From NCBI RefSeq assembly GCF_009834535.1, contig NC_045705.1, forward strand, positions 67,208,001 through 67,272,000: a stretch of DNA of 64,000 nucleotides, written 5' to 3'. Positions within the stretch are counted from its first letter, which is position 1, and every line of letters begins with the position of its first letter. Under the pieces are notes generated by a model. The model was not told the DNA's origin, did no database searches, and saw only the letters and a program-made list of their open reading frames with translations. The stretch is from Camelus ferus (lineage: Eukaryota). Shown here in pieces: positions 48,201 to 50,646 of the stretch. Both the position numbers and the translations under genes were made by a program.

Positions 48201-50646
48201 CTGGCCCTGGGCCATCTCCACTCCCAAGGCATCATCTACCGGGACCTCAAGCCTGAGAACATCATGCTCAACAGCCAGGGTGCGCACACGTCCGCCGCAC
48301 TCGCAGCTGCGAGTCCGGGGTCAGGACCCGCTGGGAGGGCCAGGGAGCCCTGTGAGCCCTGTGGGGTGGGCTGGGGCCCTGTCCTACCCCTGTAACTTTG
48401 TCTTCAGGCCACATCAAACTGACCGACTTTGGACTGTGCAAGGAGTCGATTCACGAGGGCGCCGTCACCCACACCTTCTGTGGCACCATCGAGTACATGT
48501 AAGCAGTAGACGGTAGGGCCCGGCGGTCGGGAGAACAGCCAGGCAAGACTTGGCCTGACAGACTGTTCCACTCGGCCCCCAGGGCCCCTGAGATTCTGGT
48601 GCGCAGTGGCCACAACCGGGCGGTGGACTGGTGGAGCTTGGGCGCCCTGATGTACGACATGCTCACTGGATCGGCAAGTCCAGCCTCCTCGGGGGCGGGA
48701 GTGGGGGCAGGAGGAGGGCCCCCTCCTGGGGCAGGGCAGGGCCCGGTGGGAGGCCCACAAGGCTCCTCACCCTCTGCCTTCTCCAGCCACCCTTCACTGC
48801 AGAGAACCGGAAGAAGACCATGGACAAGATCATCAAAGGGAAGCTGGCTGCTGCCCCCCTACCTCACCCCGGATGCCCGGGACCTCGTCAAAAAGGTGGG
48901 CTCCTGGCCGCCTCTCTCACTCCCTCATCTACAGAGACGGCCCGCACTCTGTCTATGTGGTGTGTATCTACTTTTACTTTAACCTGAGCACTCAACCCCC
49001 ACATCCTGTGGCCTTTCTCTTGCCTTCTGAAACAGCCTACACTCTATACAGTATGTATTTCTTTAAATAAATCTACCTTTACTCAAAAACAAAAACAAAA
49101 AACCCCAAAAATGTGGGCTTCCTCCTGCCCCTGACAGGCCCTGCATGGGCTCCTGAGTCTCCCTGGGCCAGTTGCAGGTCCACCCCTACCTGTAGACTCT
49201 GCCATTGGATAAGGAGCACTGGCTCTGGTGTCCAAGATGACAGCTCTGATGCAGACCAGCTGCCAACCCCAGACAGGTCCCTAGTCTGAGTCTTAATTGG
49301 TGAAATGTGCATGACAAACTAGTCACTGTCACCAAAAAGGCAATCACTGGGGATGAAAGTGGGTGGGTAGGCGCCCCGCCCAGATTTCGAGGTGGAGCAC
49401 CACTGAAGTGCCCTGGAGTCGTGCCAGCAACCTTTGCAAAAGCTTCACAGAGAAGGGCCACTGGACCAAATCTGGGAGGTCCTAACGGTGTCTGTAGGTG
49501 GAGACCACACTCCAGAGCAAACCCCCCAATCCCCAACCCTTGTCTCACCTTTCATCACTCCCTTGAGGCCATTCGGGAACACTCGATTATACCTCTCCCG
49601 CAGACCCTTACCCTCTGCCCTTGTCCTGCAGTTTCTGAAGCGGAATCCCAGCCAACGGATTGGGGGTGGCCCAGGAGACGCTGCTGAGGTGCAGGTGGGT
49701 CTGGGGCCACCAATAGAGGGCAGGGCTGAGCCCTGAGGGGTGCCCTGTGCAGGGAGTGGGGCCTTAGGGCACAGGGAGTTTCTGAGGGAGCCAAGGAAGG
49801 TGAAATGTTGTCAAGTTTGGGGGCACTCCACCCACAGCGGCACCCCTTCTTCCGGCACATTAATTGGGACGACCTCCTGGCCCGCCGCATGGACCCCCCT
49901 TTCCGGCCCTGTCTGGTGAGTGGAGGTCCCACTGGCCCTGGGGTGGGTGCGTGGAGGCCCCTGCCTTGGACACCCTTGACCTCTCCCCCCACCGCCGGGG
50001 TGACCACAGCAGTCAGAGGAAGACGTGAGCCAGTTTGACTCCCACTTCACAAGGCAGACACCAGTGGACAGTCCAGACGACACGGCACTCAGTGAGAGTG
50101 CCAACCAGGCCTTCCTGGTGAGGTCCGGGGCCCTGAGGGTTATAGGGTCACGGGCAGGGATTGTGGCCAAGGAGCAATGGACCTTGAGCCTCGCCCGGCC
50201 CTGCCTCTGCCCCTCCAGGGCTTCACGTACGTGGCACCCTCCGTGCTGGACAGCATCAAAGAGGGCTTCTCCTTCCAGCCCAAGCTGCGCTCCCCCAGGC
50301 GCCTCAACAGCAGCCCCCGGACCCCCATCAGGTACCGCAGGGCAGGGGACTCCAGCGGCAGGGGCACTTGACCTCACAGCCTGAGCACCAGGCAGGGAGT
50401 CGGCCCTCCCGACCCCATGCCAGTAGGCACTGACTCTGCCTTGGTTTCCCCTGCAGCCCCCTGAAGTTTTCGCCCTTTGAGGGATTCCGGCCCAGCCCTG
50501 GCCCACCAGAACCCATGGAGCCTCCTCTACCTCCTCTCCTGCCAGCGCCCCCACCACCGCCACCCTCGAGCACTGCCCCTCTCCCCATCCGACCCCCCTC
50601 AGGGACCAAGAAGTCCAAGAGGGGCCGTGGGCGCCCTGGGCGCTAG
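45254..50646 (+). CDS. RPS6KB2: Ribosomal protein S6 kinase beta-2 (S6K2), 15 exons; +1 frameshift in exon 10 as assembled (485 aa if corrected)
   Basis: Exons 45254-45331, 45689-45729, 45826-45946, 46219-46287, 46817-46964, 48016-48073, 48179-48279, 48408-48498, 48583-48673 (GC donor), 48787-48895 (109 nt, one extra base), 49632-49694, 49838-49915, 50010-50117, 50219-50331, 50457-50646. Motifs [39 protein letters not shown]. Confidence 0.95.
46444..46657 (+). mobile_element. MER20 (hAT-Charlie) DNA transposon in RPS6KB2 intron 4
   Basis: cagtaattcccaacc...ggggacatgtggcaatgtctg...ggcatccagtgagtagaagccaggga...ccccccacaacaaagaattatctg...gttgagacacactg follows the recalled MER20 consensus end to end. 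Confidence 0.8.
48903..49106 (+). mobile_element. Unclassified poly(A)-tailed retroposed insertion at the start of RPS6KB2 intron 10
   Basis: AATAAA 49066-49071, A-rich tail 49085-49102, flanked by AAAAA(G/T)GTGGGCT at 48890-48902 and 49107-49119. Confidence 0.65.

Follow-up and report, generated by a model that had tools for sequence, protein, structure and literature searches.

The window analysed here, a stretch of 64,000 nucleotides from the wild Bactrian camel Camelus ferus, carries RPS6KB2, the gene for S6 kinase 2 (S6K2), and in this gene a 202-bp insert that lies directly behind the splice donor of coding exon 9 (Table 1; in the text and table, a slash marks a junction or a cut). The window is gene-dense, with a GC content of ~59%, and contains three runs of N, which represent gaps or masked sequence (3801-4069, 5381-5646 and 56467-56606). 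Runs of at least nine A or T occur in only two places of the 64 kb, at 20742-54 and 21236-48. Within the gene region, the assembly of Camelus dromedarius and the window are 99.6% identical. Exon 9 closes with the codons GTC AAA AAG, the last of which encodes K302 in the numbering of the alpaca protein, and intron 9 begins with GTGGGCTCC at 48896 and has its last base at 49631. In the RefSeq proteins of camel (P0134) and alpaca (P0146), exon 9 is joined to exon 10 in the normal manner (...DLVKK/FLKRNP...).

Table 1. Coordinates of the RPS6KB2 features and of the parts of the insert in the window (TSD, target-site duplication)
Feature	Position	Strand	Remarks
RPS6KB2 (S6 kinase 2)	~45251 to 50646	+	
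RPS6KB2 coding exon 9 (ninth coding exon; ...DLVKK)	48787-48895	+	Translation and motif mapping; agrees with the S6K2 proteins of camel (P0134) and alpaca (P0146)
Upstream TSD copy, AAAAAGGTGGGCTCC	48890-48904	+	Holds the working donor G/GT at 48895/48896; single copy in cattle and warthog
Body of the retroposon, sense to the gene	48905-49084	+	180 bp; absent from cattle and warthog; multi-copy in camel
Internal tandem unit 1	48910-48978	+	Pyrimidine-rich stretch, CACTCTGTCTATG.. core and ATCTACTTTTACT end; without AATAAA
Internal tandem unit 2	49011-49083	+	End is AAATAAATCTACCTTTACT
AATAAA hexamer on the sense strand of the gene	49066-49071	+	Brought by the element; dromedary and alpaca have kept it too
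A-rich tail, (CAAAAA)x3 then ACCCC	49085-49106	+	Directly adjoins the downstream TSD copy
Downstream TSD copy (AAAAAT/GTGGGCTTC)	49107-49121	+	Decayed donor copy, GT at 49113-14; alpaca keeps AAAAAGGTGGGCTCC here
Remainder of intron 9	49122-49631	+	Corresponds to the sequence right behind the donor in the orthologous intron of cattle and warthog
Acceptor AG of intron 9	49630-31	+	
Exon 10	49632-49694	+	

Several other features of RPS6KB2 were recorded alongside. Exon 9 of the window carries an extra T at 48849 (GCTGGC(T)GCTGCC), which shifts the frame after KGKLA, while the remaining exons of the gene all look intact. This T is found neither in the dromedary assembly GCA_000803125.3 nor in alpaca; RefSeq camel protein P0134 is in frame, and exon 9 of the dromedary locus used below (JWIN03000075.1) is intact and in frame as well. 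The extra T is most likely an assembly error or a private variant rather than a sign of gene loss. Two GenBank dromedary models (KAB1251532 and KAB1251536; P0033/P0034) leave out exon 9, and one of them also lacks part of exon 8, which looks like mis-annotation and not biology. The intron after exon 8 uses a GC donor at 48677-48678 (GGATCG/GCAAGT) instead of GT. Since alpaca, dromedary, cattle and warthog all have GC at this donor as well, the intron is a conserved GC-AG intron. The N-terminal start of RefSeq camel isoform X2 (P0134) is encoded at 46480-46551, which in the main form is part of intron 3; it indicates a different first exon, from which an N-terminally truncated kinase results. 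A match to 'PLKFSP' in intron 4 (47621) was dismissed as a chance match, its DNA being dissimilar to that of the last exon.

A 15-bp duplication brackets the insert and contains the splice donor

An earlier, sequence-only reading of this DNA had proposed that a retroposon inserted across the donor of this intron and duplicated it. It rested on two 13-mers, which indeed lie at 48890-48902 and 49107-49119 and match at 12 of 13 positions. The duplication itself is real, but 13 bp is too short a measure: since the downstream repeat of alpaca is identical to the upstream repeat over 15 nt, the true TSD comprises 15 bp, and the insert proper runs from 48905 to 49106. The boundaries assigned to donor and insert had to be adjusted to this extent, with exon 9 ending at 48895, the used GT at 48896-97 and the copied GT at 49113-14. 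The TSD thereby spans the last six bases of exon 9 and the first nine bases of the intron. Its copies match at 15/15 positions in alpaca and at 13/15 in the window, where the downstream copy has undergone G>T at 49112 and C>T at 49120; dromedary has both substitutions as well. The first of them removed the -1 G of the copied donor in Camelus, whereas the copied donor of alpaca is intact.

The internal imperfect repeat described in the sequence-only reading was borne out by alignment of the two tandem units (~70 nt each), which gave a local alignment score of 37 as compared to 18.7 +/- 3.2 for shuffled sequences. The AATAAA at 49066 and the A-rich tail were likewise found as described, the first base of the tail lying 13 nt past the hexamer. 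In the tail, 16 of the 22 bases are A; it also holds six C's, which is unusual in comparison with a pure poly(A).

The insert is shared by camel and alpaca and absent from cattle and warthog

Orthologous loci were reached from the last exon by way of an S6K2 representative, the mammalian S6K2 proteins, their cluster entries and finally the corresponding genes with introns. Compared were two camelids, alpaca (L001) and dromedary (L004), with cattle (L002) and warthog (L003) as the only outgroups. The whole insert is present in both camelids. Cattle and warthog show a precise empty site, that is a single copy of the site reading TCAAAAAG followed directly by GTG..., and their intron sequence right after the donor can be aligned to the part of the camelid intron that follows the insert. 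Thus, the empty-site comparison that had been suggested as a check gave a clean result. Because the insert is shared by alpaca and dromedary while the site is empty in cattle and warthog, sequence comparison places the retroposition in the camelid stem, i.e. after the split from the ruminant and pig lineages and before the camel/llama split, which makes it older than ~20 million years. The element had been called lineage-specific, and this holds in so far as only the camelids carry it when compared with cattle and warthog; it is not recent, however, being common to Camelus and alpaca.

Between camel and alpaca, the insert is 95.5% identical (a difference of 4.5%), and the remaining intron sequence is 95.3% identical (a difference of 4.7%). 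With practically the same divergence as its surroundings, the insert behaves as neutrally drifting intron sequence and exhibits no sign of constraint.

The body of the insert belongs to a dispersed repeat family

Genomic contigs of camel run X3 were aligned to positions 48885-49640, requiring at least 80% likeness. The insert body matched 1342 contig pieces, mostly 80-95% alike, and the summed word depth on the body was ~48,700 as compared to ~10 for contigs with long unique flanks, a depth that does not equal copy number and puts the family roughly in the order of magnitude of 10^3-10^4 copies. A check of copy number, which the sequence-only reading had likewise called for, thus returned thousands of other genomic copies. 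That reading had also named two outcomes that would speak against a retroposon, namely orthologous introns containing the same sequence with no empty site, or a lack of other genomic copies; both were looked for and neither was found.

Other copies of the family are collinear with this one across both internal units, and the tandem structure therefore belongs to the family; in addition, joints that lead back link the units, and loose ends repeat the same motifs. The loose-end sequence also reveals AATAAA at the same place in other family copies. Nearly all of them differ from the present copy at 48931, 48958-9, 48992, 49004, 49006, 49048, 49059 and 49063. Alpaca agrees with the family majority at 48958-9, 48992 and 49063; since it carries the majority state, the changes at these positions arose on the camel branch.

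Within the 64-kb window, blastn with a word size of 7 detected no second copy; a weak match of 33 nt at 60374-60406 is an unrelated old repeat and no member of the family. No Rfam match at E<=10 and no ARAGORN hit pointed to a tRNA-, 7SL- or 5S-like part in this copy, and the window as a whole yielded neither an Rfam match at the gathering score nor a tRNA-like SINE head. Camel genomes are reported to be LTR-rich (PMC8605555), and a repeat survey lists almost only MIR among the camel SINEs (PMC6675863, Table 2). The scarcity of tRNA-like heads and of A/T runs in the window fits these reports of few lineage-specific camel SINEs.

Two RNA contigs extend past the 5' end of this copy and continue upstream with ...AACCCCGGGCCGCC..., which provides a weak lead that full-length family members are longer; as an equally weak lead, the AACCCCGGGCCGCC stretch may represent the terminal part of a B-box region like that of a tRNA. 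The present copy is probably 5'-truncated. A full-text search with family-specific sequence strings retrieved no paper, and exact-pattern scans of metagenome and viral contigs for host-derived family copies that might show a 5' head gave no hits. The 3' end of an L1 element was set aside as a source, as the insert does not appear similar to the Laurasiatherian L1 3' end.

Hallmarks of a probable L1-mediated mobilisation

The consensus target of the L1 endonuclease is TT/AAAA, and L1 nicking followed by target-primed reverse transcription (TPRT) characteristically leaves a TSD that is led by an A run, together with an A-rich tail at the downstream junction. In the present case, the TSD of 15 bp falls into the range of ~7-20 bp that is typical for L1, the A-rich 3' tail (49085-49106) adjoins the downstream TSD copy, the target GTC/AAAAAG reads TC/AAAAA and deviates from the consensus by one mismatch, and the empty sites in cattle and warthog are precise. 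By these sequence features, the insert appears to be a product of L1-mediated target-primed retroposition, in line with the L1-type insertion suggested earlier and with L1 as the putative mobiliser. L1 elements with preserved ORFs exist in Camelus (PMC8605555), and a TSD of 15 bp starting with an A run is the mode for dog Can-SINEs mobilised by L1 (PMC11699766).

The assignment of the element to a class is less straightforward. A strict SINE is defined by SINEBase through pol III transcription driven by an internal promoter, and a head with A and B boxes is absent, judged on this copy only. SINEs are also dispersed in many copies of <600 bp, and the copies of the present family are many. As this copy has no promoter head, a SINE identity is unproven. 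The tail of a T+ SINE, in which AATAAA is followed by TCTTT or T>=4 and then by an A tail (PMC11240701), is not present either, as TCTACCTTTACTC between hexamer and tail holds T3 only. The TCTTT located shortly before AATAAA occurs in Camelus only: alpaca, like most other family copies, has C at 49063. The hallmarks of a solo LTR or ERV LTR, that is TG...CA ends, a TSD of 4-6 bp and no A tail, are also lacking: the copy starts with TGGCC, has an A-rich end and is flanked by a TSD of 15 bp.

RNA evidence on the imported AATAAA and the second GT

Read-through of the exon 9 donor would add 28 new residues after K302, out of 485 residues in the full protein, and terminate at a TAA at 48980-82. The second GT, if used, adds 217 nt and reaches the same TAA. 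Missing from the read-through product would be the hydrophobic motif (FLGFTY at 384) as well as the basic C-terminal tail, and its kinase fold would be incomplete at the end.

All RNA evidence stems from camel runs. An RNA contig of 590 nt from run X16 covers 49112-49640 and extends 42 nt further upstream and 19 nt further downstream. This contig, for which pre-mRNA or carried-over DNA are possible sources, is continuous across the predicted cleavage site and unspliced at the copied GT. RNA reads showed no pile of begins or ends at the insert, where positions 49074-49111 were masked and untemplated-A ends are invisible, and no RNA joint from 49112 was reported in the stretch 48885-49640. The latter stretch is almost wholly intronic, and reads across the canonical exon 9-exon 10 junction fall outside the count. 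Two raw single-cell RNA runs, of which ~1-2% each was sampled, gave zero depth on the unique intron flank.

U1 bound at an active donor suppresses nearby downstream poly(A) signals, a process known as telescripting. The imported AATAAA, located ~170 nt past an active 5' splice site, should by analogy be largely suppressed by U1. In Camelus, the -1 G>T exchange should weaken a donor copy (GTGGGC) that is already modest. Both the AATAAA and the second GT are very probably silent. Low-level use of either may occur nonetheless, above all in alpaca, where both donors are identical over 15 nt and might compete.

The predicted truncated S6K2 was correct with regard to the read-through peptide, but use of the AATAAA on which such a product would depend received no support, as the RNA contig reads through it. 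For the second GT as a cryptic donor, the same contig and the loss of the -1 G in Camelus speak against the proposal.

Discussion

Three other explanations deserve consideration. The flanking repeat could be a chance match or the result of a local duplication or insertion at the DNA level rather than of retroposition. In favour of this, direct repeats are by no means rare in the window: 77 pairs with at least 12/13 matches occur at a spacing of 100-500 bp. But an A-rich tract precedes the second copy in only 1 of these 77, namely the TSD pair. The 15/15 repeat in alpaca, the precise empty sites in two outgroups and the dispersal of the intervening sequence in thousands of copies also argue against this explanation, which we consider exceedingly improbable. 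A different origin would be that the family is an ERV LTR and that the copy represents an L1-made retrocopy of the U3-R 3' end of a transcript terminated in the LTR, much as the sequence-only reading, by speaking of a possibly LTR-derived element, had suggested. The position of AATAAA 13 nt before the tail is as expected for the end of a retroviral R region, thousands of copies are typical of LTR families, and camel genomes are described as LTR-rich with almost no SINEs besides MIR in PMC6675863 and PMC8605555. Against this stand the ends of the copy and its long TSD, as well as its pyrimidine-rich stretches, its AATAAA tail and its tandem 'terminal' units, which are more like the tails of Can and Ere SINEs (PMC11240701). 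The AACCCCGGGCCGCC stretch upstream in the two RNA contigs, as a possible tRNA-like B-box end, points weakly in the same direction. The hallmarks of this copy give no support to an LTR ancestry, which appears rather unlikely to us on balance.

It is also conceivable that the insert is functional, that is that polyadenylation takes place in the intron at the AATAAA and/or splicing from the second GT as a cryptic donor, and that the resulting truncated S6K2 (302 + 28 residues) or nonsense-mediated decay tunes S6K2 dosage. Consistent with this idea, a TGTG-containing stretch follows ~27 nt past the predicted cleavage site, the second donor of alpaca equals the real one over 15 nt, and the RNA runs contain 0.6-0.75 of the words of the intron. 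Moreover, sense-strand reads dominate over the family copies in two single-cell RNA runs, which fits polyadenylation in 3'-biased libraries; this bias, however, is equally explained by oligo-dT priming on A-rich tails. On the other hand, exon 9 is joined to exon 10 as usual in the products annotated for camel and alpaca, and the RNA contig passes both sites with neither a pile of read ends nor a joint from 49112. The insert evolves at the neutral rate of the intron, and the Camelus copy lost its -1 G with no further change. In addition, U1 at a nearby 5' splice site is generally known to suppress downstream poly(A) sites, and the truncated product would be devoid of the kinase-fold end, the hydrophobic motif and the basic tail. 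We regard such a regulatory role as quite unlikely. Just as speculative is a combined scenario, in which an undescribed camelid-specific L1-dependent family, characterised by terminal units in tandem and a tail with AATAAA, would have provided Lamini with a second donor and/or an AATAAA that diverts a measurable share of RPS6KB2 to a dead-end isoform, and in which Camelus would have escaped via the -1 G>T exchange.

Taken together, our data are best explained by a fixed, ancient retroposition product that is very probably functionally silent, a reading to which we assign a probability of about 0.8. According to this explanation, the L1 machinery would have nicked the bottom strand opposite TC/AAAAA at the end of RPS6KB2 exon 9 in the camelid stem, and reverse transcription at the nick would have copied an RNA with an A tail, stemming from a retroposon family of moderate copy number. 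The product would be a 202-bp copy, probably 5'-truncated and flanked by the 15-bp TSD. As the staggered cuts would have bracketed the donor, the latter would have been duplicated in the process. The upstream TSD copy presumably stayed on the exon, unchanged from -6 to +9, allowing splicing to exon 10 to continue. Initially, the downstream copy would have offered a second donor of the same sequence, located 217 nt inside the intron, which later lost its -1 G in Camelus. The gene thus survived the insertion since the exon end and the donor, through +9, are preserved in the upstream TSD copy, as the sequence-only reading had rightly anticipated.

The locus provides a clean and datable textbook case of how an insertion that hits a splice donor can do no harm thanks to the staggered cuts of TPRT, since the duplicated target carries a full spare splice signal. 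Being present in Camelus and Vicugna and missing from cattle and warthog, the insert also represents a shared-derived marker for Camelidae. Furthermore, it points to a camelid repeat family that has been left unnamed in standard camel repeat surveys. Knowledge of S6K2 itself is unchanged, and no regulatory role is shown.

Among described elements, the camelid SINE vic-1 is similar in being camelid-specific and L1-dependent, as stated in PMC3531059 (citing Lin et al. 2001). The same paper portrays vic-1 as a 'simple' SINE, consisting of a tRNA-derived head and a tail like rodent ID. The camel insert has no tRNA-like part and an unrelated body of 180 bp, and as far as this description goes it does not fit vic-1. 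A likeness in architecture exists to the Ere SINEs of Perissodactyla, which have one or two terminal domains of ~50 bp and, in some subfamilies, AATAAA before the tail (PMC11240701). Both share tandem 3' terminal units and mobilisation by L1. In contrast, Ere has a defined tRNA head and ~4x10^5 copies, as compared to ~10^3-10^4 copy-equivalents for the camel family, and unlike Ere the camel insert has no TCTTT/T>=4 terminator after AATAAA.

In dogs, the merle and narcolepsy alleles are caused by Can-SINE insertions in genes that import AATAAA or disturb splice sites. The Can-SINE (SINEC_Cf; PMC11699766) resembles the camel insert in that both are short L1-dependent retroposons which contain a stretch rich in pyrimidines and an AATAAA in sense orientation, along with an A-rich tail; the Can-SINE likewise has a TSD mode of 15 bp led by an A run, and its insertion at an exon/intron border duplicates splice signals. 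However, the insertions described in dogs are of young age, frequently polymorphic and of phenotypic consequence, and carry a tRNA-Lys head. The camel insert, in contrast, is fixed across camelids, more than ~20 My old and headless; the low-copy family behind it is unnamed, and the insert shows no detectable effect. Intronic copies in the dog study lose their AATAAA (PMC11699766), while the camel copy has kept it. Thus, the event at RPS6KB2 is of a known kind and represents a new instance of it, apparently an ordinary and silent one.
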